Position numbers and translations under genes: made by a program
The notes under the pieces: generated by a model
Told to the model about the DNA's origin: nothing
Database searches by the model: none
Seen by the model: only the letters and a program-made list of their open reading frames with translations
Assembly (NCBI GenBank): GCA_977020255.1
Contig: CDROCS010003840.1
Span: forward strand, 248,001-312,000
Direction: 5' to 3'
Source: Obrimoposthia wandeli
Taxonomy: Eukaryota
Length of the DNA: 64,000 bases
In this document: one piece after another, positions 1,537 through 22,430 of the stretch
Position numbering within the stretch: position 1 is the stretch's first letter
Layout of the letters: each line of letters opens with the position of its first letter

Positions 1537-2736
1537 ATGTTGTATAAACTACTCCGTAGTCACCCTGCGAGCATAGATGACATACTAAGGTGGAATAAAA
1601 AATCATCTGTTAATGATTTTATTATTAATGAAACAATAAAATTGTTTGTTAAAAATCCCCCATCAGAAAATGTAGCATTGTCATTACCGACGAGAAAATA
1701 TCAAGGGTATTGTAATCAGGCCTTCATTGCATTTATTGTTGGGTACGATGAATCTCATCTCTGTTGTAGTGGATGGCAAGCATCGAAAAGTATAGGTAAC
1801 CCTTCAAAGGAACCTTTGAAGGAGATATGGAATAGCGAGCAGGCGAAAGCATTTAGAAAGTCTATCATTGACGGCTCTTATCGGTACTGTTTAGATGATA
1901 CTTGCCCATTCTTAAGCTCAGATAATAATAACTTCCCTAGATTAGAACAATATCCGACCTCTATTCAAAATGATATCATTCGTGGTGACGGTGTCATGTC
2001 TCATGGTCCGGCGTTTCTTAATTGTGGTTTTGATATGTCTTGCAATCTTTCTTGCCCATCTTGTAGAAGCGAAAAAATCATTGAAGTTGGAGAGCGAGCA
2101 GATAACATCAAAAAAATTGAAAACAAGATAGAAGAGATTGGTTCATTCTTCCATAATATTTCAATCTCAGGCTCAGGTGACCCATTCGGCTCTCCATATT
2201 CAAAAAGATTCTTAAAAAGAATTAATAGCACCATATTTCCAAATCTTAAAAATATCAACTTGCACTGTAATGGGCAGTTATTTACGCAACGTAATTGGGA
2301 GCAATTACCACAAATTTTTCAAGATAGTACAATTAGCGCAGAGATATCACTCGATGGCTCTACAAAAAAAACAATCGAGTGCAACCGCAGAGGCGTAATT
2401 TTTGAAAAGTTATTAACTAATCTAAAATTCATTGCTAAATTAAGAAACCAGCAAAAAATTAACAGTTTAAAATTTAGTTTTGTTGTACAAGATAATAACT
2501 TTCATGAAATGAGTGATTTTGTTGAATTATGTGTTGGGTTGAATGCCGACTTTATTATCTTTACTAAGATTGTAAATTGGGGAACATTTACCGAAGAAGA
2601 ATATGCTAAAAAGGCAGTTCATATGAAAACTCACCCGAATCACCATGCTTTAGTAGAAGTTATCAATAATGAAAACTTAAAAAATAGAATTGTCATGTTA
2701 GGGAATTTAGAACCATTACTTTATGATGAAAGATAA
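1537..2736 (+). CDS. Radical SAM protein with N-terminal SPASM/twitch-like Cys cluster
   Basis: CNLSCPSC (CxxxCxxC), SGSGDPF and ISLDG motifs. Upstream YC...LCC...IGN...EIWNS...C....CP pattern is SPASM-like. Confidence 0.85.
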   Translation: MLYKLLRSHPASIDDILRWNKKSSVNDFIINETIKLFVKNPPSENVALSLPTRKYQGYCNQAFIAFIVGYDESHLCCSGWQASKSIGNPSKEPLKEIWNSEQAKAFRKSIIDGSYRYCLDDTCPFLSSDNNNFPRLEQYPTSIQNDIIRGDGVMSHGPAFLNCGFDMSCNLSCPSCRSEKIIEVGERADNIKKIENKIEEIGSFFHNISISGSGDPFGSPYSKRFLKRINSTIFPNLKNINLHCNGQLFTQRNWEQLPQIFQDSTISAEISLDGSTKKTIECNRRGVIFEKLLTNLKFIAKLRNQQKINSLKFSFVVQDNNFHEMSDFVELCVGLNADFIIFTKIVNWGTFTEEEYAKKAVHMKTHPNHHALVEVINNENLKNRIVMLGNLEPLLYDER

Positions 2737-2804: not shown

Positions 2805-3821
2805 CCTGATTACCACCGAACCTCAGCTAGCTTGAGTAAATGTTGAGGCATCGGTGTTGTTTGAATACTTGAATAAATTAGCTGTTCAAGCATCTTTTCT
2901 AAATTAAACCGTCGATTGAACTTAAAACAGAACTCTGCAAGATAACGGGGTAAATGCTTATTATTGATTGAATGATAAGTGCCATGCATTGAGTTTTTAA
3001 CATTACTAATCATGGTGTTGACCCATTTAAAATAAGGCAACTCTACACAACCAGCTCCACCGCCTGTGACAATCGCATGGTGAAAGCTTTTTGCATCTTC
3101 AATACCACGAAAGCAGGCTAGACCATCAGAAATAACGAGTGATTTAGGCCTTAAATATACTTTAGCCCAGCGAGTCAGTTCTGCTTTCTTAAATCCATCA
3201 ACAGCACTAAAACGCATCCGCATAGGATGACTATCGTCATTCATTGATACGGCAGCAACAAAAGGCCGTTTCCCTTTAGCTCCTCGTCCTCGGATGCCAC
3301 GCTGGACACCGCCCCAGTAGGCATAGTCTATTTGAACGCAATCACCTAACGGTGTTTTATCGTCACGTTCTTTTATTGCTTGCATGAGTTTCTGTTTGAC
3401 TCGCCATGCCGTGTTGTATGAGACACCGAGTTGCCTTGAAAGATCAAGGGCTGAAATACCGTTTTTTTCTTGTGTTATAAGATAAATAGCTAAGAACCAA
3501 ACAGTTAAAGGCAGTTTGGAATAGGCAAACAGAGTACCCGATATCAATGAAGTTTGATGATGGCATAGGTTACATTGAAATAAAGCGCGAGATTGTAAAT
3601 GGCAATATCTGTCATGGTTGCAGTTAGGGAAACGGTATCCCGTCGGCCCTCGCTTCTCGAACAACCTTTTCAGGCATTGCTCCTCAATACCATACTTATT
3701 CATAAAGTCATGGATAGAAATGCCTTTTTGAAACTGAATTTTATTTTTAGCCATGATCTCACCCTCATGAAATCACTTATATAAGTGTAGTTAAGAAGGT
3801 GGAGTATTAGGGGTAATCAAG
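2805..3821 (-). mobile_element. Complete IS1595-family element, 1017 bp
   Basis: Terminal inverted repeats CCTGATTACC (2805-2814) and GGTAATCAAG (3812-3821), flanked by an 8-bp direct repeat AAACTTTA at 2797-2804 and 3822-3829. Confidence 0.9.
2810..3754 (-). CDS. IS1595-family transposase, possibly inactive
   Basis: N-terminal Zn ribbon, GISALDLSRQLGVSYNTAW, SDG and YLAEFCFKFNRR motifs. Normally conserved residues look substituted (RGP for RWP, FPNC for CPxC, IDYAY at the first catalytic position). Confidence 0.88.
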   Translation of the reverse strand: MAKNKIQFQKGISIHDFMNKYGIEEQCLKRLFEKRGPTGYRFPNCNHDRYCHLQSRALFQCNLCHHQTSLISGTLFAYSKLPLTVWFLAIYLITQEKNGISALDLSRQLGVSYNTAWRVKQKLMQAIKERDDKTPLGDCVQIDYAYWGGVQRGIRGRGAKGKRPFVAAVSMNDDSHPMRMRFSAVDGFKKAELTRWAKVYLRPKSLVISDGLACFRGIEDAKSFHHAIVTGGGAGCVELPYFKWVNTMISNVKNSMHGTYHSINNKHLPRYLAEFCFKFNRRFNLEKMLEQLIYSSIQTTPMPQHLLKLAEVRW

Positions 3822-4222: not shown

Positions 4223-4585
4223 ATGAAAAGATCTGCCCCTGTTGTTAGGGACGTAATGCATAAAGCATTGTTCAATGAGCGGGTTATCCACGGCGACGAA
4301 ACGACACTTCAGGTTCTAAAGGAACCCGGCAGAAAGGCGCAGAATAAATCCTATCTCTGGGCTGACTCCAGCCCTGAACAAAGTACCACGTCAGTGGTGT
4401 TTTCGAGTACTAGACGGGTAGGGCACATACTTACGGCAATACTTACAGACTTCCACATCTGGCTTGATAAGACGGCAGCTAAACTGCTTTCCCAGAGCCC
4501 GATGGGAAGGCGGTTAGTTATGCGCTCAAACAGTGGATCTACTTGAAAATGTATGTCGAGGATGGTTCTACCCTATAGCAATACG
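4223..4585 (+). mobile_element. IS66-family transposase remnant with internal deletion
   Basis: IHGDETTLQVLKEPGRKAQNKSYLW, then in a shifted frame AVSYALKQWIYLKMYVEDG. Confidence 0.8.
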
Positions 4586-4920: not shown

Positions 4921-7050
4921 TTAAGCGACAGCGTTGCGTGTAGTTGACTCTGTACTTTGGCTAATATCGATACTCCTATCAGCCGCAGCGATAGTTTCAG
5001 GTCGATGAGCGATCTGAACTGCCGGTAAGTTTAAGTCACGTATCGCTTGTATAATCTTTTTCTCGCTAGCAACATCCAGGTGGCTTGTCGCCTCATCGAG
5101 AATCAATAATTTAGGTCGCTTATAAAGCGCCCGCGCAAAGATAATACGCTGTTTTTGTCCGCCGGATACTGTGCTCCCCATCTCTCCAACCAGAGTTTGA
5201 TATCCCATAGGCATAGCTTCGATCTCATCGTGAATATTTGCAAGCTTGGCACACTCAATGGCCCTTTCCATGTCTACCTGTTCGGAGAAGAAACAAATAT
5301 TGGACAGGATTGAGCCATTAAATAACTGATCATCCTGAAAGACAGAGCCAATATCCGTTCTCAGCTCAGCAAGATTACAGTGAGAAACATCCTGGCCAAA
5401 TATTCTTATTTGCCCAGTGTTGGGCTGATAAAGCCCTAGGATCAGTTTGGCCAAGGTGGTTTTCCCGCACCCGGATCGACCGGTTATTGCCACCACCTCG
5501 CCAGGTGACACTGTAAAAGACAGGTTTTCAAACAGCACTGGGCTGTTGTCAGAGTAACGAAAGCTTAGGTTGTCTGCGCTCACTGTTACGGCATCACGTC
5601 CCGGTTTTCGGTGAGCCTGCGAGGGAAAATCTGCGTTAAGCCGCTCTTTTTTTGTTAACACTATGTCTGCCAAGCGCTCGGTATGTACAGACAACATTTT
5701 AAATTCAAAGTAATTGTTAATCAGCCCAGTAACGCTTGCCGAAAAACGTGCCTGAAAGGATAAGAAGGCAATGAGCATACCTACGGTAAAAACATCATCC
5801 AATACTAGTTTAGCTCCCAGCCACAACACCCCTGCCGTGGTAATAGCCACTAAACCCTCAATTAACACACTATAAATCATCAGTAATTTGGACTCATTAA
5901 GCTGGGCATTTCTCCGAGCAATGTTTAGATTTTTCCAAGCGTTTTCCCGCCATCCCATCCCTCCATTGATCCTAACACTTAGGATCCCATGTAGCGTTTC
6001 AAGAAAGTGACTCAGTTCTTTGGCATTCGTTGACCAGATATCTTCTTCTGCTCGCTTGAAACTGTCGAACCAGGCAAAACGTATCAGGGCATAGATTAAT
6101 GTTGTAGTGATGCATACCATTGTCAGTGTAGGGCTGTAGACCAGCATAATAACGAGCGTTCCGGTTACCAAAATAATGTCCAGTAGCGCCTGAATAATAT
6201 TCGTGGTAATTGCATGCTGGATGGTATTCAGTGAATCAAATTTAGCTGATATATCCCCCAATTCTCTCTTTTCATACCAATCAATAGGAAGTCTAATCAG
6301 ACGGTGAAAGACATTGGCAGCCCACTGCATATTAAAGTTGACCGACAAATAAATGGTGAACCATTGGCGCGCAAAACTGACTAGGCTTTGCGTCGCCGCA
6401 AGCATTAACAAGGCTACTATCACCAAGTCAAGTAAGTTGTGGTCAAAGCCGACTAAAACTTCATCAATAATAACCTGATTAACCAGTGGTGCCATAAGAG
6501 CCAACACTTCGAGTGCCACTGCAAAGATGAAAATTTTAGTAAGCGCTCGTTTAAACCCCAACGTTTTTCCGATTAGATCCCTGATCCGAACTTTTTTCCG
6601 AACATCTGTCTTTTCAAAGTCATGCGTTGGTGCCAGCTCCAGTGCAATGCCTGTGTAGTGCTTGTTCAGCTCAGTCCCAGTGACTTTTCTTACTCCCGAT
6701 GCTGGATCGTAGATTTCGTAGTACTTGTCGGTGACTTTACTGAGAACGACAAAATGGTTCATATCCCAATGTAAAATACACGGTAAAGCCAGTTGCGGTA
6801 AGTCATCCAAACTGGCATGTAAAGGCCTGGAAGAAAGATTCAAATTCTGCGCAGAACTAATCACATCCGCTAGTGTCAGCCCATGCTGTGAGAAGTTATA
6901 GCGTGACCGTAAAGCAGGCAGATCGATTTTGAAGCCATGCCAATCAGCGATCATCGCCAAACAGGCCACACCACACTCAGCCGATTCTGTCTGTCTGATC
7001 AGCGTGAGCTTTTTCCGCCATGTCCAGTCGAGACTTTCCATTTGGATCAT
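4921..7050 (-). CDS. C39 peptidase-containing ABC transporter (CvaB/MchF-like peptide exporter)
   Basis: ECGVACLAM (catalytic Cys) and LHWDMNHFVVL (His), TM domain, Walker A GRSGCGKTT, signature VSGGQKQR, Walker B ILDEAT. Likely start at 7050 overlaps the HlyD stop (ATGA). Confidence 0.93.
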   Translation of the reverse strand: MIQMESLDWTWRKKLTLIRQTESAECGVACLAMIADWHGFKIDLPALRSRYNFSQHGLTLADVISSAQNLNLSSRPLHASLDDLPQLALPCILHWDMNHFVVLSKVTDKYYEIYDPASGVRKVTGTELNKHYTGIALELAPTHDFEKTDVRKKVRIRDLIGKTLGFKRALTKIFIFAVALEVLALMAPLVNQVIIDEVLVGFDHNLLDLVIVALLMLAATQSLVSFARQWFTIYLSVNFNMQWAANVFHRLIRLPIDWYEKRELGDISAKFDSLNTIQHAITTNIIQALLDIILVTGTLVIMLVYSPTLTMVCITTTLIYALIRFAWFDSFKRAEEDIWSTNAKELSHFLETLHGILSVRINGGMGWRENAWKNLNIARRNAQLNESKLLMIYSVLIEGLVAITTAGVLWLGAKLVLDDVFTVGMLIAFLSFQARFSASVTGLINNYFEFKMLSVHTERLADIVLTKKERLNADFPSQAHRKPGRDAVTVSADNLSFRYSDNSPVLFENLSFTVSPGEVVAITGRSGCGKTTLAKLILGLYQPNTGQIRIFGQDVSHCNLAELRTDIGSVFQDDQLFNGSILSNICFFSEQVDMERAIECAKLANIHDEIEAMPMGYQTLVGEMGSTVSGGQKQRIIFARALYKRPKLLILDEATSHLDVASEKKIIQAIRDLNLPAVQIAHRPETIAAADRSIDISQSTESTTRNAVA

Positions 7051-8309
7051 TCGTTTATTCCTTGCATACGAGCAATTGGCCCCAATAACCATTCATAGAG
7101 CTTTCTCGTTTCCACATTAATATCAGCGCTGACTCGCATCCCGACTTTCAGTGGCTCTTCCCGGCCATAGACATCAATAGTGGGTTTGTGGAGTGAAACC
7201 ACTATTTTGTACAGCGTTTCGGTGTCGGAGCGGATAGTTTGATCCTGAGCCTTAAGCTCTAGGGGGGAAACGGTAGACTGGGAAATACTGAGTACCTTAC
7301 CCTTCTGAATACCAAACTTCTCATGTGGATAAGCATCGAAGCGCAATCCAACAGGTTGCCCTGTGTGTAGAAAGCCTATCGATCGACTCGGCGCATAGAG
7401 CTCCACCTGTAACTCGGCTCCATCAGGGATTATATTAAGGAGCACTTCTCCCTGACTGATTGCTTGACCGCTTTCAGCTCTTAGGGTGGTAACCTTGCCA
7501 TCGATCGGGGCGTGCACGACGGTTTCTGAGGCAGAGGTAAGCTCAATTTGTTGTTGATTCAAACTGTCTAGCTGTCTTTCAAGCTCCAGCCCCCGCATCT
7601 TTCCTTGCAACGATATATAGTCAATTTGATGCTCAGTAGCGATGCGCTCTCTTTCCAATTGCTGAATAAACAGTTTTTGATTCTCTTCTTCGGCCTGCAA
7701 GCTGACTAGGCTAGACAAATAATCTTTGAAGGTTAAATCGGAGATATATTGATTTTCCAGTAGCTTCTTGTAGCTCCCGTTTGCCTGTCGTTTTAACGTC
7801 GTCCTTACTTTGGCAAACTCGAGAGACTGCTTCGCACTCTCGACCTCTAGATCTAGCCGCGTGATCTTGCTCTCCAGATCACCAATACGGGATTTATTCA
7901 TTAGTTGCTCATAATCTCGCTGACTTCTGAGTGAAGAAAACTGCTGCGCTAGACTATGCTGTAAACGCTGGTTGATGCTTGCTCCGCTACTGTCAAACAG
8001 CTCGCTGTTTACTTTAAGCAGACCTGTTGACTTAGCAACGCGCTGCCCGTCTTTAATATGGATTTCTTCAATCACTCCACTTTGAGCGGATTTAACAGCG
8101 ATAAGACCGGTCGACGGTACAATAACACCCTCTAAATACGTTTTTTTTGTGTAGCTACCAAGCACAAGCAATGCCAAAATAGCGGAAATAACCAAGATGC
8201 AGCAAGCCGTCACTATGCGTTGATTCAAGCCTGACAATAATAGGATTTGCCCGGTTTCTGCTTGGTGCTGCTGCTGAAGATATTCTTGCCGAAAGATTTG
8301 CTGTGACAT
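7047..8309 (-). CDS. HlyD-family membrane fusion protein (CvaA/MchE-like)
   Basis: N-terminal TM anchor, long coiled coil, HAPIDGKV lipoyl-like motif, LRFDAYPHEKFG and the ETRKLYEWLLGP tail typical of bacteriocin secretion adaptors. Confidence 0.92.
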   Translation of the reverse strand: MSQQIFRQEYLQQQHQAETGQILLLSGLNQRIVTACCILVISAILALLVLGSYTKKTYLEGVIVPSTGLIAVKSAQSGVIEEIHIKDGQRVAKSTGLLKVNSELFDSSGASINQRLQHSLAQQFSSLRSQRDYEQLMNKSRIGDLESKITRLDLEVESAKQSLEFAKVRTTLKRQANGSYKKLLENQYISDLTFKDYLSSLVSLQAEEENQKLFIQQLERERIATEHQIDYISLQGKMRGLELERQLDSLNQQQIELTSASETVVHAPIDGKVTTLRAESGQAISQGEVLLNIIPDGAELQVELYAPSRSIGFLHTGQPVGLRFDAYPHEKFGIQKGKVLSISQSTVSPLELKAQDQTIRSDTETLYKIVVSLHKPTIDVYGREEPLKVGMRVSADINVETRKLYEWLLGPIARMQGINE

Positions 8310-8338
8310 ACTTAAGTTGCGCTACCTGCCCTTATCTG

Positions 8339-8363
8339 AAAAACAGGGACAAAAGTGCCCCTG
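8339..8363 (-). terminator. Intrinsic terminator between precursor and export genes
   Basis: Minus strand reads CAGGGGCAC-TTTT-GTCCCTG followed by TTTTT. Confidence 0.6.
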
Positions 8364-8406
8364 TCATATTGATATCAGGCTTGCGCCTATTGCTGAGAAT
8401 TACCGA

Positions 8407-8550
8407 TTAACGGTAGTAACTTTCTTCGCTAGTACCGCCACCGCCAATTGGGCGACCTTCTTCGTCAGTACCACTACCACCACCAGTACTACCTTCTTCG
8501 CCGCCGGCACCAGTGACTAGCTTGATTTGGTCTTCATTAAGTTCAAACAT
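8407..8550 (-). CDS. 47-aa double-glycine-leader precursor peptide MFELNEDQIKLVTGA-GGEEGSTGGGSGTDEEGRPIGGGGTSEESYYR (not in ORF track)
   Basis: Translated by hand: ATG at 8550, TAA at 8407-8409, AGGA RBS upstream. The 15-aa leader fits the M-x-E-L-x-x-x-x-I-x-x-V-x-G-[GA] pattern. Lies directly upstream of the HlyD and C39-ABC genes. Confidence 0.88.
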   Translation of the reverse strand: MFELNEDQIKLVTGAGGEEGSTGGGSGTDEEGRPIGGGGTSEESYYR

Positions 8551-8654
8551 ACATATTTCCTATATATTAAATGATGCAGCAAAAGTGCGCTGCCCACATT
8601 GAGACTGAAAACAGCCTAATTTTTTGATTACTGTTTTGGAGTAAATTATTAGCT

Positions 8655-9827
8655 TTAACGAGTCAGCCACTTTTTGTCTCGGCCGATGATTTCATCCAAA
8701 TACCCCAGAATATTGGGAATCCAAGTAATAAAACGTAGCAGGTGGGTAAATAGAGGCAGCATGGCCATTTCTAGCCAGCTGAGATTATGTGGGTTACCCG
8801 TTTTCCCGATGAAGATAAAAATAAATATTGATTCGACCAGTAGAGCTATAGTCATGATGGTCAAAGGGAGCCACATATCGAAGATTGCAAACAGCGGCAT
8901 CGCAATTAATATTGGTGGAAACAAAAATTCGGTTGCTGAAATCAGGAACCAAGGCAAAGAAACGATGCCCATAAATGGCGAAACCTTCCAAGTTTCCCAG
9001 AATGCTTCTACACGCCCCCTAGACCACCTTCTGCGTTGTCGGAACAGTGCATTGTTATTTTCAGGGCATTGAGTAGTAGCAATAGCCTGAGCGGCATATC
9101 CAGTTCGGTAGCGATTGGCCAACGCTTTCCAACACCAGGCAATGTCTTCAACCAACCATTCACTCCAGCCTCCGAGTTCTTGCACTACACTGGCTCGATG
9201 TGCGACAAATGCACCTGCAAGCACTGGCACGACTCCTAACTGATCCTGAGATGTTCTAAGTGCACCATGAACGCCTATATGCTCATAGAATTGTGATTTA
9301 CAAAGTAGGTTGCTCTCGCGATTTTTTGGCACAACGTAACCGCAAACTGCAGCGTATTCAGGGTGGCTCCAAATTTTACTGGCTAGTGAAAGAATACCGC
9401 CGGGTTCAATAAAAGTATCACTGTCAACTATGATGTAAATTTCTCCCGTAGCGACCTGCCGCTCTAGGGCAAAGTCTAATGCAGCACCTTTTCTCCCCGT
9501 ATTTTCATCTCTGGTCAGTAATAGGTATTCTTGCTTTCTTTTTTTCTGCAACCATATTTCTACGCTAGCTGGTGTTTTATTTGTAGAACCATCATTAATA
9601 ATAAGCACTTGGATTTTTGACGGATATTCCTGTACATCAACTTTCTCAAGCGCAGTTAGTAATAAGTTTTCATCCTCATTATAAAAAGGGACAAACACTG
9701 TAACTAAAGGAAGATCATTCCTAATTGTTTCTGGTTTCCACTTCAGCATAAAGATAGCCATTAGAGCCATAACGCACATAAGCTCTACTATAAGCGGTAC
9801 TGATATTATTATTGATAGCGTGTCCAT
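8655..9827 (-). CDS. Family 2 glycosyltransferase, processive membrane type (PgaC/IcaA-like)
   Basis: VPFYNE, INDGS, VDSD, VED and QRRRW motifs; N- and C-terminal TM segments. Confidence 0.9.
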   Translation of the reverse strand: MDTLSIIISVPLIVELMCVMALMAIFMLKWKPETIRNDLPLVTVFVPFYNEDENLLLTALEKVDVQEYPSKIQVLIINDGSTNKTPASVEIWLQKKRKQEYLLLTRDENTGRKGAALDFALERQVATGEIYIIVDSDTFIEPGGILSLASKIWSHPEYAAVCGYVVPKNRESNLLCKSQFYEHIGVHGALRTSQDQLGVVPVLAGAFVAHRASVVQELGGWSEWLVEDIAWCWKALANRYRTGYAAQAIATTQCPENNNALFRQRRRWSRGRVEAFWETWKVSPFMGIVSLPWFLISATEFLFPPILIAMPLFAIFDMWLPLTIMTIALLVESIFIFIFIGKTGNPHNLSWLEMAMLPLFTHLLRFITWIPNILGYLDEIIGRDKKWLTR

Positions 9828-9849: not shown

Positions 9850-11232
9850 TTAAATCAGATAATCTGACATTAATTCATGTATTTTTTTTCTTGAACCACA
9901 ATTACCTTTCAGTCTCGGGTCAGAAAATATGGTAAATCTCGAGTACTTTATGTTTCTGTATTTGAATTTAGGCTTTGCTTCCTGATAGCCAACTAATTCA
10001 AGTGCTGAATGTATTTCACTTGCAAATCTATTTTCATCAAAATCACAATCAGACAGTCTCGATACGTGCTCTTTTCCCTTTCTTAATACTTCTTTTATTT
10101 TTTTTCCGATTTCGGTAAGGTCTTTTGTCTTTAAGGGGATACCACACTCAATAGCGGTATACCTATTTTCCTGCTCTTCCAATGTTGAAATGAACTTATC
10201 TATCAGCGCTCTCCGTTGCTCAAGAGCAAGACCTGACTGGCTATGTTTATTTAAGTGATAGAAAAAAGTTTCTAGCCACTCGGTTATTCCACAGTGGTCA
10301 TCCCAAGTAGCACCTAGGCCTGATGTAAGTAAAACGTTAGAAAAATCACCTATACCTGACATTGTTCCTAAGTCTAAAAAGCGTCCATCAAGTGCAATAT
10401 TTGAACTGGTTAACGAACCATGTGGCATCCCTTTCACCCGGCTAGCCGCCATTTGCGTAGCAAACCGAATAACAAACCGTTCAACTATGTCGTAAATCGG
10501 GGTATCGCTCCCTGTTTTAGAACGTTCGTTTTCCTCCAGTATCGTTATCGACTCTTCAACATACTTGTGTGTTGCGTCGCGAAGGCGTACGTATTCCTGC
10601 TTTGGCCAAAAATTCAACGCTGGTTCGAAGTGTGCTGGTCGGGTAGCAACTTCTCGAATCATGATCGAGCAAGGCTGCTCAACGATGTCTCCAAAAGTAT
10701 TGGCGCCAACGATAGTCTGAGGAGTTCTTATGACAGCAATAATGCGTAAAGCACCAAAAGGCAGTTCCCTATGACAGATTTCGCTCCAGATGGATTCACT
10801 CAACGCTTCACTCAACGGTAACTTACCTGATGAATGTCCTTCATCAACATTGATTGCAACTAGAGGGTTGACACCGTTACCTTTAATCTGCAACTGGCCG
10901 TTCAACCCACAGCGCGCGCTGCCTCCATTCCCCACATCACCAGTATTACCATACCGATCTGCAAGAAACATTTTTTTGTCACCCAAGTTTAGATCTGTAT
11001 CGTCAGCATAGCCGCGGCTAACATAAGCAAAGTTATCTAATATGAGTTTTTCCGCACTTTTGATGCTAATACCATGCTCTTCAAGATAGTTTTCATTGAG
11101 CCAGGAAATTTCGGGATTTTTTATTTTATAGGCCGGATATTCGACAAAACTGCACTCTGCAAGGCAGTCTCCAAAGATCAACGTATTATCTCTGTCTGGG
11201 CTATCGTAAGTCTCAAGAATGTTATCTTTCAT
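9850..11232 (-). CDS. MchC/MceJ-like protein (SelO/YdiU pseudokinase-like fold)
   Basis: ADRYGNTGDVGNGGSARCG, QIKGNGVNPL, HSSGKL and HGSLTSSNIALDGRFLDLG motifs. Confidence 0.8.
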   Translation of the reverse strand: MKDNILETYDSPDRDNTLIFGDCLAECSFVEYPAYKIKNPEISWLNENYLEEHGISIKSAEKLILDNFAYVSRGYADDTDLNLGDKKMFLADRYGNTGDVGNGGSARCGLNGQLQIKGNGVNPLVAINVDEGHSSGKLPLSEALSESIWSEICHRELPFGALRIIAVIRTPQTIVGANTFGDIVEQPCSIMIREVATRPAHFEPALNFWPKQEYVRLRDATHKYVEESITILEENERSKTGSDTPIYDIVERFVIRFATQMAASRVKGMPHGSLTSSNIALDGRFLDLGTMSGIGDFSNVLLTSGLGATWDDHCGITEWLETFFYHLNKHSQSGLALEQRRALIDKFISTLEEQENRYTAIECGIPLKTKDLTEIGKKIKEVLRKGKEHVSRLSDCDFDENRFASEIHSALELVGYQEAKPKFKYRNIKYSRFTIFSDPRLKGNCGSRKKIHELMSDYLI

Positions 11233-11238
11233 GTTAAT

Positions 11239-11727
11239 TTACCAACTATATACTGGTGATGAACTTCCCGGTTCTCGGTAGTAAATGCTTTTTACACCTG
11301 ATTCTTTTAGTTCTTTTTTTATTTTTATCAGGTCTTTGATAAATTTCATTTCTGGACAAGGCAAGCAGATATCAAGCATGATAAGATTTGCCCCCTCATT
11401 CCACTGAGAAGGATGAGGAACGAATTGAGGGTTAGTCAAATACTCATCGAGTGTTTTATCATTAACCCATGCCCAAACTAAATATCCAGAAGGATATTGA
11501 TCGAACTCTCCTTCAAGAAGTTTAATTTGTTCATTATTTATTGCTGGTATCATCCAGTGATAAAATGAACCGATGCTAATTTTTTTTCTATCATTATTTT
11601 TTGCATAGACATAGCAAAGATCACCAAGAAGAGCCCGTCGGGTCTCAAATTGAATATTTCTAAGTGAAGTCTCCAGGATTATTGAATTCCAAGCGTGAAT
11701 AGTTGGTATATCGTTATCAATTATCAT
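11239..11727 (-). CDS. HlyC/RtxC-family acyltransferase-like protein (MchD/MceI-like)
   Basis: PAI..EQI, PSGYLVWAW and HPSQWNEG..L..LD...P motifs; 162 aa; ends 6 bp upstream of the MchC-like gene. Confidence 0.8.
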   Translation of the reverse strand: MIIDNDIPTIHAWNSIILETSLRNIQFETRRALLGDLCYVYAKNNDRKKISIGSFYHWMIPAINNEQIKLLEGEFDQYPSGYLVWAWVNDKTLDEYLTNPQFVPHPSQWNEGANLIMLDICLPCPEMKFIKDLIKIKKELKESGVKSIYYREPGSSSPVYSW

Positions 11728-12149: not shown

Positions 12150-12419
12150 TTAGAGCTGGTAACTGTTCGGTTGGTATTAGCAATGTAATACTACGAGCGA
12201 CTCGGGGGAATTTTTGAATGAGCCCCTTTTTTCTAAGGTGTTAATCATTTGGTTAACACTGGGCGGAGTGACCTCAAAATATTTCTGCATATCAGTGTGT
12301 GCAGGTGGTACACCATTGGGTTCGGTGTACTGAGAAATAAATGCTAAATACTGGCCTTGCTTGTCAGTAAATGAAAAAACGTGGTTCAATGATCGACATA
12401 TCAAGCTATCTGTGATCAA
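12150..12419 (-). pseudogene. Small MarR/LexA-N-type winged-HTH protein, frameshifted near the C-terminus
   Basis: FTDKQGQYLAFI...PPAHTDMQKYFEVTPPSVNQMINTLEKRG; the expected LI...ARSI continuation is in another frame. Confidence 0.55.
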
Positions 12420-12451: not shown

Positions 12452-13220
12452 ATGAATATCAAATATATAGTTGAATTAAGCAAACAAGAAAAAGACGATT
12501 TAAACTAACTAACCTCGAAAGGAAAATCATCAGAGAGAATGCTTAAGCGAGCAAATATTTTGCTGATGGCTGATTGTCGAAACCATCAGGACAAAGACAT
12601 TTCAAAGGCGTTAAATGTTGGTTCTACTACAATTGGTCGTACGAAAAAGAGATTTGTTGAGCATGGTTTGACTGAAGCCTTTAATGAAGGTGCTCGATTA
12701 GGTATGCCCCGGAAATTAGATGGAAATCAAGAGGCCTTATTGATTGCTCTAGCATGCAGTAAACCACCAGAAGGTTGCTGCCGTTGGGCACTAAATTTGA
12801 TTGCCGACAGATTCATTTCTTTGAGTGATTTGAATGTTGTTTCAATCGAAACTATTCGTCGTCGATTCAAAGAAAATGATTTGAAGCCTTGGCAGAAAAA
12901 AATGTGGTGTGTTGGGAAAATGAATACCGACTATATTGCCCAAATGGAGCACATACTCGATTTATATGCTAAGCCAGCAAATCCAGCTCAACCCGTTGTT
13001 AATTTCGACGAAGCGATGAAACAACTCGTTTCTGATATTACGCCACCAAGCCCAGTCAAACTAGGCAACTCGCTCGAATGGACTATGAATATAAACGTGT
13101 GTGTGGCAAACATATTCATGTTTTTTGACCGCCATAATGGCTGGAGAAAAGCGAAAGCAACACTGAGTAAAAAAGCCAAAGATTTTGCCCATTGTATGAA
13201 AGATCTAGTTGATGAACTAA
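12452..13220 (+). mobile_element. IS630-family transposase pseudogene (premature stop near 12505, truncated 3')
   Basis: MNIKYIVELS..., GRPRKL-like motif, ACSKPPEG..RWAL, LKPWQKKMWC and VVNFDE. Confidence 0.8.
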
Positions 13221-13281
13221 ACCTGCCCGTGGATTCGCGAATAAATATAACCAGAATCGGTTGTGTTCGATGCGTAGCATC

Positions 13282-13569
13282 TTAACCAGTTAGAGACTTC
13301 AAGCAAGTTATGAGTTCGTAATCAAATTCGATGTCGATATTAGCCTTGGGGATTGAACGACAAGCCAGAATTTCATTTGAACCGACAAAAGCCATCGCAT
13401 CTTGCTGGTCTACTGCACCTGACTTCAACTTACAGCGGCACGCACCGCACATGCCGTTACGGCATTGATATTCAGGTTGAATACCGGCACTTTCTAATTG
13501 GGTAAGCAAAGATTCACGGCTATTGCCGTGAACCTCTTGACCGTTAACCTTAATGGTTAGTCGGCTCAT
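13282..13569 (-). CDS. yfaE: 2Fe-2S ferredoxin, RNR maintenance protein
   Basis: CRNGMCGAC...C motif; ATGA overlap with the nrdB stop. Confidence 0.9.
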
Positions 13570-19751: not shown

Positions 19752-22430
19752 ATGAGCGATCTTGCAAAAGAGATCACGCCCGTTAACATTGAAGATGAGC
19801 TGAAAAGCTCGTATCTCGACTACGCGATGTCAGTTATCGTGGGTCGTGCTCTTCCGGATGTGCGTGATGGCCTAAAGCCAGTGCACCGTCGCGTATTATT
19901 CGCGATGAATGTGCTAGGCAATGACTGGAATAAAGCTTACAAAAAATCTGCCCGTGTGGTTGGTGACGTAATCGGTAAATATCACCCACATGGTGATAGT
20001 GCTGTATACGATACTATCGTACGTATGGCGCAACCATTCTCGCTACGCTATATGCTTGTTGACGGCCAAGGTAACTTTGGTTCTGTCGATGGTGATTCAG
20101 CGGCGGCAATGCGTTACACCGAAATCCGTATGTCAAAAATCGCCCACGAATTGTTGGCTGATCTTGACAAGGAAACCGTTGATTATGTACCTAACTACGA
20201 TGGTACAGAATTCATTCCTGCGGTTATGCCAACTAAGGTTCCAAACCTTTTAGTTAATGGTTCTTCGGGTATCGCGGTAGGTATGGCAACAAACATACCG
20301 CCCCATAACCTAGGCGAAGTGATCAATGGTTGTTTAGCATTTATCGATAATGAAGATATCACTGTCGAACAGCTAATGGATTACATCCCTGGACCAGACT
20401 TCCCAACAGCAGCCTTGATCAACGGCCGTAAAGGTATCGTTGATGCTTATCATACTGGTCGCGGCAAAGTTTACATGCGTGCCAAAGCGAATATTGAAGT
20501 TGAGAAAAATGGTCGAGAAACCATTATTGTCACTGAGATTCCATATCAGGTTAACAAAGCACGCTTAATCGAAAAGATTGCAGAGCTAGTTAAAGATAAG
20601 AAAGTTGAAGGCATTAGCGCATTACGTGATGAATCTGATAAAGATGGCATGCGTATTGTTGTTGAATGTAAGCGTGATGCGGTAGGTGAAGTTATTCTGA
20701 ATAACCTTTACTCGCAAACTCAGCTGCAAACAACATTTGGTATTAACATGGTTGCACTTGACCATGGCCAGCCGAAGTTGTTCGGCCTTAAAGAAATGTT
20801 GAAGTGCTTCGTTAATCACCGCCGTGAAGTGGTGACGCGTCGTACTATCTACGAATTGCGTAAAGCACGTGAACGTGCACACCTTCTTGAAGGTCTTGCA
20901 ATTGCTTTGGTTAATATCGATGCAATTATTGAATTAATTCGAAATGCACCAACGCCACAAGTTGCACGTGAAGGGCTACTTGCTCGTCCGTGGCAGCTAG
21001 GTGATGTTGCAGCAATGCTTGAACGTGCTGGTGTTGACGCTGCACGACCTGAGTGGTTAGAGCCACAATTCGGTATTCACGGTGGTCAGTACTTCTTAAC
21101 TGAACCACAAGCACAAGCAATCCTTGAGCTACGTTTACACCGTTTAACAGGTCTTGAGCACGAGAAGATCCTTGAAGAATACAAAGGCCTTCTTGATGTT
21201 ATCGAAGAATTACTTCTTATTTTAGGCAATCCTGAGCGCCTAATGGAAGTGATTCGTGATGAGCTTCATGCTGTTAAAGAACAGTTTAACGATGAACGTC
21301 GTACTGAAATTACAGCAGCAAGCCATGATATCGATCTTGAAGATTTGATTACGCAAGAAGATGTTGTCGTGACTTTGTCTCACGAAGGTTACGTTAAGTA
21401 CCAGGTTTTGAGCGATTACGAAGCTCAGCGTCGTGGTGGTAAAGGTAAAATAGCAACACGCATGAAAGATGAAGATTTCATCGAGCGTCTGCTAGTGGCT
21501 AATACACACGATACGATTTTGTGCTTCTCAAGCCGCGGTCGTATGTACTGGCTGAAAGTTTACCAGTTACCATTAGCGAGCCGTACTGCTCGTGGTAAGC
21601 CAATCGTGAATATTCTTCCACTGGAAGAAGGTGAGCGTATTACTGCAATTCTGCCTGTACGTGAGTACGAAGCAGACAAGTATGTATTCATGGCTACCGC
21701 TGATGGTACTGTGAAGAAGACACCATTGACTGATTTCAGCCGCCCTCGTAGCGCTGGTATCATTGCTGTGAATCTGCGTGAAGGCGATTCATTGATTGGT
21801 GTTGATATTACTAACAGCACCGATGACATCATGCTGTTCTCTAAATTCGGTAAAGTTGTTCGTTTCTACGAAAGCGCCGATGAGAATGGTAAAGGTGGTG
21901 TTCGCGGAATGGGTCGAACTGCTGCGGGTGTCCGTGGTATGAAGCTTGCTGCAGGTGATAAAGTTGTATCACTGATTGTTCCACACAACGAAGGTGATGT
22001 ACTAACTGTAACTGAAAACGGTTACGGTAAGCGTACAGCACTTACAGAATACCCAGCGAAGAGCCGTGCAACACAAGGTGTTGTGTCAATTAAGGTTTCT
22101 GATCGTAATGGTAGCGTTGTTGGTGCAGTTCAAGCTGAAGACGGCGATGAGTTCATGATGATCACCAACGGCGGTACGTTAGTACGTACACGTGTTGCTG
22201 AAGTAAGTCGTGTCGGTCGTAACACTCAAGGTGTTACATTGATCCGTACTGCTGAGAAAGAACTTGTTGTTGGCCTACAGCGTATTGATGAACTTGAAGT
22301 TGTTGAGCTGGAAGAAGACGCTATCGTAGATGGTGAAATTGCAGTTGACGGCGAACAAGTTGTTGATACCGATGCAGCACAGCAGCCAGAAGCAGATTCA
22401 GAGCAAGGCGAATCAACTGACGAAGAGTAA
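19752..22430 (+). CDS. gyrA: DNA gyrase subunit A
   Basis: [20 protein letters not shown], GyrA box QRRGGKG and acidic tail. Confidence 0.99.

Follow-up and report, generated by a model that had tools for sequence, protein, structure and literature searches.

In class IIb microcins, the enzyme pair MceIJ/MchCD attaches enterobactin, in its glycosylated form, to the precursor at its Ser/Gly-rich C-terminus, and the characterised members of the MchC/MchD pair act on the C-terminal carboxylate of the co-encoded peptide (PMC7472721). Related genes have also been described in V. cholerae and A. wodanis: proteins of V. cholerae MZO-2 and AM-19226 were placed in an mchC group by Dudkiewicz et al. 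(2012), who reported an island, GI-52, with mchD-, hlyD- and hlyB-like genes and found no mchB-like microcin gene in Vibrio (PMC3281104), and Hjerde et al. (2015) described, on pAWOD920 of A. wodanis, a locus devoid of a family 2 glycosyltransferase (GT2) that encodes a 112-aa bacteriocin with a GG motif and homologues of MceI/J, and that is transcribed in vivo (PMC4462113). Here, we analysed a 64,000-nucleotide stretch, referred to as the window, from an assembly of Obrimoposthia wandeli (GCA_977020255.1, contig CDROCS010003840.1, positions 248,001 to 312,000), in which a gene for a 47-aa peptide lies at 8407..8550 on the minus strand, next to genes for a membrane GT2 and a peptide exporter. 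We consider it somewhat probable that this gene encodes the exported peptide of an mchCDEF-type island in Photobacterium, and that the peptide is joined by MchC/MchD-type chemistry to a glycan made by the GT2.

The window locus shares several features with the class IIb microcins MccH47 (mchBCDEF) and MccE492 (mceAGHIJ), namely a double-glycine leader of 15 aa with GA or GG at its end, a Gly-rich core, an exporter composed of a C39 peptidase-ATP-binding cassette (C39-ABC) protein and an HlyD protein, and the MchC/MceJ plus MchD/MceI tailoring pair; the window exporter is 40% identical to MchF over its full length. GI-52 is a cluster of the same type as that of the window: its genes come in the same order, its MchC-like protein shares 64% identity with the window's, and two homologues of the window peptide (48 and 49 aa) sit between the GT2 and hlyD of GI-52. 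The family described here supplies the structural gene that was lacking from the mchC island noted in 2012 in non-O1 V. cholerae.

The precursor gene and its conservation

The operon runs on the minus strand in the order HlyC-like, MchC-like, GT2, peptide, HlyD and C39-ABC. Its elements are the following:

11239..11727, minus strand: MchD/MceI homologue, an HlyC-family acyltransferase of 162 aa (Pfam HlyC, E 1.7e-13)
9850..11232, minus strand: MchC/MceJ homologue with a SelO/YdiU kinase-like fold, 460 aa (BLASTP, profile, AlphaFold2/Foldseek)
8655..9827, minus strand: membrane GT2 of the processive synthase type (Pfam GT2 families and Chitin_synth_2, motifs, NCBIfam)
8599..8619, minus strand: upstream hairpin 1, just past the GT2 stop codon; its arms vary between taxa and their complementarity is kept
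8576..8594, minus strand: upstream hairpin or palindrome 2, GCAGC..GCUGC, nearly invariant in sequence, about 25 nt before the Shine-Dalgarno sequence
8558..8561, minus strand: Shine-Dalgarno sequence AGGA, 7 nt before the ATG at 8550
8407..8550, minus strand: precursor gene, 47 codons plus stop (translation, syntenic homologues, synonymous versus non-synonymous change in the leader), with the leader in codons 1-15 (8550-8506), the 32-aa core at 8505-8410 and the stop codon at 8409-8407
8338..8365, minus strand: terminator-like hairpin with a 10-bp stem, a 4-nt loop and a U-run, between the precursor gene and hlyD
7047..8309, minus strand: HlyD-family membrane fusion protein in the MchE/MceH role (Pfam/NCBIfam scans)
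4921..7092, minus strand: C39 peptidase-ABC exporter, MchF/MceG homologue (Pfam Peptidase_C39, ABC_membrane and ABC_tran)

A precursor of 47 aa preceded by an AGGA ribosome-binding site had been proposed for this position in the original prediction, and translation of 8407-8550 on the minus strand yielded exactly that peptide, with AGGA at the expected distance from the ATG. All the residue counts given for the core were likewise correct: the 32 residues comprise 12 Gly, 6 Glu, 1 Asp, 7 Ser/Thr (4 Ser and 3 Thr) and 2 Arg, in addition to 2 Tyr, 1 Pro and 1 Ile, with no Cys and a net charge of about -5. The core has a mass of 3.1 kDa (monoisotopic, 3091.29), an isoelectric point of 4.06 and a grand average of hydropathy of -1.35; it contains no hydrophobic toxin domain and ends in T-S-E-E-S-Y-Y-R (pattern E-E-x-Y-Y-R). 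A threefold unit was recognisable at the protein level only, and more clearly in the homologues, and no DNA-level repeat was found in the open reading frame (ORF) with Tandem Repeats Finder. A 7-bp inverted repeat spans the stop codon of the precursor (8399-8417).

Two features of repeats-in-toxin (RTX) proteins were also looked for in the peptide. The RTX-like motif GGxGxD occurs in few members of the family and is not conserved, and was rejected as the defining feature; an internal Lys acylation site of the RTX-type HlyC kind is missing, as the core has no Lys; the sole Lys of the peptide, K10, belongs to the leader and is not invariant in the family. The E-x3-Y spacing of the tail resembles that of PqqA, which is kept as an idea only, since most clusters have no radical S-adenosylmethionine (SAM) partner.

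In about 11 genomes of Vibrionaceae, a total of at least 16 homologues were found in the same slot, that is, between a membrane GT2 and the HlyD plus C39-ABC exporter genes. The same gene order, with one to three homologous peptides, was present in P. nomapromontoriensis, P. lipolyticum, P. jeanii and V. cholerae MZO-2-type contigs, as well as in a Vibrio metagenome-assembled genome, V. cionasavignyae, V. maritimus and E. coralii. The set of genes in E. norvegicus is the same, but with the GT2 inverted and located downstream, and a short Logan contig comprised the peptide and exporter genes only. In the alignment of 16 peptides, M1, F2, E3, L4, V12 and G14 are invariant and Q8, I9 and S13 nearly so, and three Glu-Glu (EE) motifs are invariant or nearly invariant. 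Conservation in the core is highest for these EE motifs and for a Tyr that falls among the final three positions: the tails read YYR, RYR, PYR, GRY, GYK and similar, where the last residue can be R, Y, K, N or S and the Tyr stays constant.

The reading frame is preserved across several indels among the homologues, which bears directly on the conservation that had been named beforehand as a test of the gene. Within the 15 leader codons, mean pairwise change per site was 0.62 at synonymous (pS) versus 0.14 at non-synonymous (pN) positions, a difference that indicates purifying selection on the leader, and a ribosome-binding site of the AAGGAAA type lies upstream of all homologous copies. That the ORF might be a chance open frame in an intergenic spacer is hardly credible in the face of these comparative data: although it is short and Gly-rich, and no Pfam or NCBIfam family matched the peptide in our scans, the frame is kept by 16 syntenic homologues, synonymous far exceeds non-synonymous change in the leader, and both the ribosome-binding site and a downstream terminator-like hairpin are conserved. 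Comparison of the homologous loci confirms the ORF as a real, conserved gene for a small peptide.

The family is real but rare: a profile of the 16 peptides retrieved only 11 small family peptides from 1.84 billion cluster representatives. Two giant proteins that also matched this profile contain cadherin-like repeats and were discarded as relatives. A search of 5.8 billion proteins with the peptide returned three small homologues, and further ones were obtained from the contigs of these and of homologues of the 460-aa neighbour. Neither the window's own peptide nor its 460-aa neighbour was present in that collection, so the whole genome seems to be absent from it. When the leader DNA pattern was searched in the whole assembly, 21 matches were obtained versus 6 for the control, among which only the window's own copy was recognised. 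Taken as a whole, the alignment defines a rare conserved peptide family, recognisable by its MFEL-type leader, its three Glu-Glu motifs and the Tyr in its tail.

A second ORF in Enterovibrio norvegicus (L005:15703-15909), beside the inverted GT2, begins like an MFEL leader and then continues into a hydrophobic, unrelated frame. The operon proper has no GT2 in this species, and the locus has the appearance of a cluster that was rearranged and retains a degenerate copy of the precursor.

The precursor gene is flanked by predicted hairpins on both sides. The hairpin at 8338-8365 has a predicted fold of -35.9 kcal/mol (z -3.0), and comparable GC-rich hairpins with a U-run follow the last precursor gene in most of the homologous clusters examined (P. 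lipolyticum, P. jeanii, P. nomapromontoriensis, V. cholerae, E. norvegicus, E. coralii, V. cionasavignyae and the Logan contig), with stem and loop letters varying by taxon; only a weak stem was seen at this position in V. maritimus. The mRNA from which the 47-aa precursor would be translated probably ends, at least partly, at this hairpin. Upstream, the summed minimum free energy of 11 orthologous 30-nt stretches covering hairpin 1 was -71, versus -22 +/- 5.6 for shuffled sequences. No Rfam family matched the flanking hairpins, and the two upstream ones could be an mRNA processing or stability element or the site of a regulator.

Leader, exporter and probable cleavage site

The original prediction had described the first 15 residues as a leader of the microcin V/E492 type ending in GA, and had linked it to a C39 exporter. 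Both proposals held. Counted back from Ala15, the family leaders follow the register M-15, L-12, Q/E-8, I/L-7, V-4, G-2 and A/G-1, which in the window peptide is represented by M-15, L-12, I-7, V-4, G-2 and A-1 and which is conserved in the 14 distinct leader sequences compared. The consensus published for the GG motif of Gram-negative bacteria is M(R/K)ELX3E(I/L)X2(I/V)XG(G/A) (PMC4462113); the window leader fits it in 13 of 15 positions, with F2 and Q8 deviating. Canonical class IIb-type peptides recovered in our survey of related clusters (see below) also had 15-aa leaders ending in GA or GG.

The C39-ABC exporter and the HlyD protein are encoded directly downstream of the peptide on the same strand. 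The true start of the exporter is likely the ATG at 7050. Its peptidase domain matched Pfam Peptidase_C39 with an E value of 4e-35, and the published patterns of the C- and H-motifs matched fully, at residues 34-62 and 113-130, respectively.

Cleavage after Gly14-Ala15 is, judging from the leader register, very probable. The alternative that had been put forward, a cut after Gly16-Gly17, is unlikely because residues 16 and 17 are not conserved (position 16 is G, Y, C, E, A or F) and such a cut would break the -4/-7/-12 register. A complex prediction that paired the 47-aa peptide with residues 22-165 of the exporter, its C39 domain, reached a score of 0.27, the mark being 0.34, and was used neither for nor against this assignment. 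In the proposed pathway, the C39 domain of the ABC exporter would recognise the 15-aa leader and cut it off after Gly14-Ala15 during export, which would proceed by way of the ABC/HlyD pair together with a TolC-like channel whose gene lies elsewhere.

Probable tailoring enzymes and the candidate conjugate

The two genes at the start of the operon were compared with bona fide MchC and MchD, taken as the neighbours, on a Salmonella plasmid, of an mchF with 97% identity to the reference (BLASTP). The 460-aa protein was 36% identical to MchC over 230 aa (E 2e-33) and the 162-aa protein 39% identical to MchD over 67 aa (E 3e-14); judged by these alignments, the two are true homologues of MchC and MchD. 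No Pfam family matched the 460-aa protein significantly, the only hit being SelO (E 0.019), and its homologues are labelled MchC or SelO-family by their sources. In line with this, the profile of its family matched crystal structures of SelO/YdiU, and Foldseek returned YdiU/SelO as the sole strong matches (E 1e-10, TM score 0.57) of its AlphaFold model (predicted local distance difference test score, 80). The HlyC-like protein alone gave no meaningful match against the PDB.

In the catalytic loop of the 460-aa protein, the metal-binding residues Asn278 and Asp287 are invariant. The Asp of the SelO TDN motif aligns here with an invariant Ser277, and Ser is also found at this position in bona fide MchC. 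A Ser in place of the TDN Asp would fit the activation of a carboxylate better than the deprotonation of a hydroxyl.

The membrane GT2 encoded between the MchC-like gene and the precursor has hydrophobic segments at its N- and C-terminus and the motifs DSD (135-137), ED (227-228) and QRRRW (264-268), a set that is the signature of processive cellulose-synthase-like enzymes. Its best NCBIfam matches were PgaC_IcaA (135 bits, with a cut-off of 422) and NodC (90 bits, with a cut-off of 550), and its best solved relatives were PDB 6yv7 and BcsA. By these scores, the enzyme is related to PgaC/IcaA and NodC but a member of neither.

Given this set of enzymes, MchC and MchD probably act on the window's peptide. 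Before export, the 32-aa acidic, Gly-rich core would be tailored by the SelO-fold enzyme and the MchD-like acyltransferase and, by analogy with the siderophore-microcins, its C-terminal carboxylate would be joined to a sugar hydroxyl in an ATP-driven reaction. The MceIJ-type reaction is, according to Nolan and Walsh, reportedly ATP-dependent, with an ester to a glucose hydroxyl as its product. In the window, the sugar would most likely be a GlcNAc-type (N-acetylglucosamine) oligosaccharide from the co-conserved PgaC/NodC-like GT2, and the product a peptide-glycan conjugate. For the specific bond, a C-terminal ester to the GT2-made glycan, the analogy gives a plausible candidate to which we assign somewhat less than even chances.

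Several points weigh against such a conjugate. The C-terminal residue of the window peptide is not Ser, unlike that of the characterised MceIJ substrate, and a purely C-terminal modification leaves the three internal EE motifs unexplained. Since the GT2 falls under the PgaC and NodC cut-offs, its donor sugar and product are not deducible from its family, and a GlcNAc-type oligomer is the most economical guess; a membrane-embedded processive synthase would also be an odd supplier for a conjugation in the cytoplasm. Further, A. wodanis and P. frigidiphilum carry the MchC/MchD pair and a peptide without an adjacent GT2, which therefore is not obligatory for the pair. Finally, a search of sequencing runs found the stretch in no RNA run, which counts on the same side; a single DNA sample contained it.

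The fold of the 460-aa protein also accommodates a different outcome, in which the peptide is exported in the same way but the MchC- and MchD-like enzymes modify side chains instead of the C-terminal carboxylate, either by nucleotidylation of the conserved C-terminal Tyr or by activation of the EE Glu residues towards an ester or amide, formed either inside the peptide or to the product of the GT2. AMPylation or UMPylation of Ser, Thr and Tyr is the activity of SelO/YdiU enzymes, and the features most conserved in the core are precisely the EE motifs and a Tyr that stays constant next to a variable terminal residue. However, the invariant Ser at the position of the SelO TDN Asp, together with the retained metal-binding Asn and Asp, fits a carboxylate acceptor better, and the sole characterised members of the enzyme pair target the C-terminal carboxylate. 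We regard side-chain modification as unlikely.

The processive QxxRW signature and membrane segments of the GT2, whose best family match is the poly-GlcNAc (PNAG) synthase PgaC/IcaA, raise another explanation, namely that the peptide serves as primer or carrier for a poly-GlcNAc-like chain and ends up in a secreted peptidoglycan-like or matrix molecule for biofilm or adhesion rather than in a discrete small conjugate. Microcins are reported in a recent paper to promote biofilm formation in Acinetobacter. A long polymer is, however, an improbable cargo for a C39 ABC/HlyD exporter built for peptides, and no PgaB-, PgaD- or PgaA-like partners are encoded in the cluster, so that this role appears highly improbable.

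The organisation of the operon bears on a further alternative, according to which the peptide would be an unmodified GG-leader pheromone or signalling peptide, or a class IIa-like microcin, that merely shares the exporter, while the acyltransferase, the SelO-like protein and the GT2 make an unrelated product. Its small size, the missing hydrophobic domain, the lack of a detectable immunity gene and the presence of one to three diversified paralogues per cluster would all suit such a peptide; diversified paralogues are also known for pheromone genes. Against this, the cluster has no conserved sensor kinase or regulator, the peptide always lies next to the tailoring trio within a single operon in spite of differing flanks, and in every characterised case MchC/MchD target the co-encoded peptide. 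This explanation is thus very unlikely.

Returning to the peptide-glycan conjugate, the missing hydrophobic domain and the lack of a detectable immunity gene favour an uptake-targeted, signalling or matrix role over membrane-pore toxicity. The original prediction had suggested signalling, metal binding or scaffolding as plausible roles; the surrounding genes point, more narrowly, to MchC/MchD-type coupling with a sugar. If the proposal is correct, a peptide-glycan ester would be a new modification of the type found in peptides that ribosomes make and that are modified after translation (RiPPs) and possibly part of a new uptake-hijacking strategy.

Related clusters and described systems

The genomic surroundings of the operon contain the following additional features:

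1537..2736, plus strand: radical SAM protein with an N-terminal SPASM/twitch domain
2810-3754: IS1595
4223-4546: IS66 fragment
12177-12419, minus strand: 80-aa ORF just upstream of the operon, which by eye looked like a candidate small winged-helix regulator
12539-13285, plus strand: helix-turn-helix transposase-like gene just upstream of the operon

The block neighbours nrdB, nrdA and gyrA, and the flanks of the cluster differ in every species examined; IS1595, the IS66 fragment and the upstream genes mark it as a mobile cassette. The assembly comprises 1.35 Gb in 6912 contigs, a size that marks it as eukaryotic. GyrA of the window (19752-22430), in contrast, shares 94% identity with its counterpart in Photobacterium lipolyticum and 93% with the one in P. 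nomapromontoriensis, on which basis the contig is taken to be bacterial and from Photobacterium, be it a symbiont, an associate or a contaminant of the sequenced host. The radical SAM protein at 1537-2736 is 63-66% identical to the products of a tandem gene pair located after the ABC exporter and a methyltransferase of the P. jeanii cluster, whose peptide is of the same type as that of the window, and 34-36% identical to those of two genes within the Jeongeupia and Iodobacter MchC clusters; it bears no relation to the radical SAM proteins of the long-peptide Vibrio clusters. Judged by these identities, its gene probably belongs to the same island as an accessory tailoring gene that was displaced and inverted by insertion sequence activity, with IS1595 and the IS66 fragment now lying in between. 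No methyltransferase remnant was found in the window.

Species-representative genomes were scanned with an MchC-like profile, and the resulting 78 loci were screened for neighbouring genes and for ORFs with GG leaders. Four types of cluster were distinguished:

Short acidic EE peptides, the window's type: 41-62 aa, in Photobacterium, Vibrio and Enterovibrio, with a GT2 60-84% identical
Long Gly-rich peptides with the leader MYNL..VDGG: 80-105 aa, partly hydrophobic, in many Vibrio, Photobacterium, Aliivibrio, Serratia and Dryocola
Short peptides of 44-46 aa in Iodobacter and Jeongeupia, the type being present in Chitiniphilus, Jeongeupia, Iodobacter and Janthinobacterium, with a GT2, radical SAM genes and a methyltransferase
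Canonical Ser-tailed, class IIb-like peptides: in Enterobacterales and Pseudomonas, without a GT2

The long Gly-rich clusters carry the same GT2 family, a radical SAM gene and often, after the exporter, a hexapeptide-repeat acetyltransferase; in a few of them (L009, L026) small membrane ORFs follow the long peptide. Many tails in these clusters (L008, L009, L022-L044) resemble GGYGY. Together, the long Gly-rich MchC/MchD/GT2 clusters look like an uncharacterised microcin class. The Iodobacter and Jeongeupia clusters contain a GT2, two SPASM radical SAM genes and a methyltransferase, and their GG-leader peptides (L045:6744-6878, L046:6738-6878), located upstream of the MchC-like genes, are rich in Gly, Trp and Tyr.

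The peptide tails differed with the presence of the GT2, in a comparison list that includes some spurious ORFs and is not tree-corrected. In GT2-linked clusters, 27 of the 39 peptides had an aromatic residue among the last four and the mean was 1.0 Ser in the last ten, compared to 2.1 Ser on average in GT2-less clusters. Ser-rich tails, seen in Enterobacterales and Pseudomonas examples, were confined to the GT2-less clusters in the survey. The MchC/MchD pair, which had been known from enterobactin-linked microcins only, thus occurs widely in combination with a membrane GT2.

To our knowledge, all GT2-bearing genera are chitin degraders, and Chitiniphilus, Jeongeupia, Iodobacter and Janthinobacterium degrade chitin. 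In a broader, decidedly speculative view that we rate as having a slim chance, MchC/MchD would be a general ligase module coupling ribosomal peptides to sugars, which in Vibrionaceae, Serratia and the chitin-degrader genera would operate with a NodC/PgaC-like GT2 to make peptide-(GlcNAc)n "glyco-microcins" that enter target cells through chito-oligosaccharide uptake, as siderophore-microcins do through catecholate receptors; of this Trojan horse, the window's short acidic EE type would represent a form without cargo or one for signalling.

The original prediction had set the core apart from pore-forming microcins, and the survey bears this out: related Vibrio and Serratia clusters encode Gly/Ala-rich hydrophobic peptides of 80-105 aa together with small membrane ORFs, whereas clusters of the window's type have no conserved one. 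A simple hydropathy scan of nine clusters of this type revealed no conserved small membrane ORF that could be an immunity candidate.

Among the described systems, the A. wodanis locus and the long-peptide clusters have in common with the window an MceI/MceJ-like pair, a GG-leader peptide, HlyD and a C39-ABC exporter, and most long-peptide Vibrio, Photobacterium and Serratia clusters, though not A. wodanis, carry the GT2 family of the window (46-52% identity). They differ in their peptides, which have 80-113 aa, are Gly/Ala-rich and contain hydrophobic stretches, and in companions that often include small membrane ORFs, an Abi/CAAX protease, a radical SAM enzyme or a hexapeptide acetyltransferase, none of which is present in the window's operon. 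In recent class II microcin surveys and full-text searches, neither this peptide type nor its GT2 partner was described, with overlap with the V. cholerae microcin MvcC not excluded.

NodC and PgaC/IcaA resemble the window GT2 in size, membrane topology and the D/DxD/ED/QxxRW motifs, and are its best profile matches. In contrast to them, the window enzyme scores far under the equivalog cut-offs, is encoded within a peptide operon and has no NodA-, NodB- or PgaB-like partners. Glycocins of the sublancin and glycocin F type likewise combine a ribosomal peptide with an enzyme of the GT2 family and a C39-ABC exporter encoded next to it. The transferases of glycocins are, however, soluble and non-processive enzymes that glycosylate Cys, Ser or Thr in disulfide-stapled helices, whereas the window GT2 is of the membrane synthase type with QRRRW, and the window core has no Cys.

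With regard to class IIb microcins themselves, the window core is 32 aa long and strongly acidic, compared to cores of 5-10 kDa with a hydrophobic toxic domain, and its tail reads E-E-x-Y-Y-R in place of the Ser-rich motif of about 10 aa ending in Ser that is the site of siderophore attachment. The island has a membrane GT2 instead of an IroB-type GT1 and an IroD-type esterase: the GT2 was the only sugar enzyme among the operon ORFs, and neither IroB- nor IroD-type proteins were found with Pfam and NCBIfam in the ORFs between the flanking insertion sequences, the rest of the bacterial genome not having been searched. No immunity gene was found in the island, and a search allowing up to three mismatches detected no Fur box in the window; therefore, iron control of the mceX/mchX kind is not indicated. 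As the peptide misses three class IIb features, namely the Ser tail, the enterobactin enzymes, and the toxic domain with its immunity gene, we do not, on the present sequence comparison, file it in that class. It is nevertheless like the class IIb microcins in its export and, by analogy, probably in its ligation chemistry.

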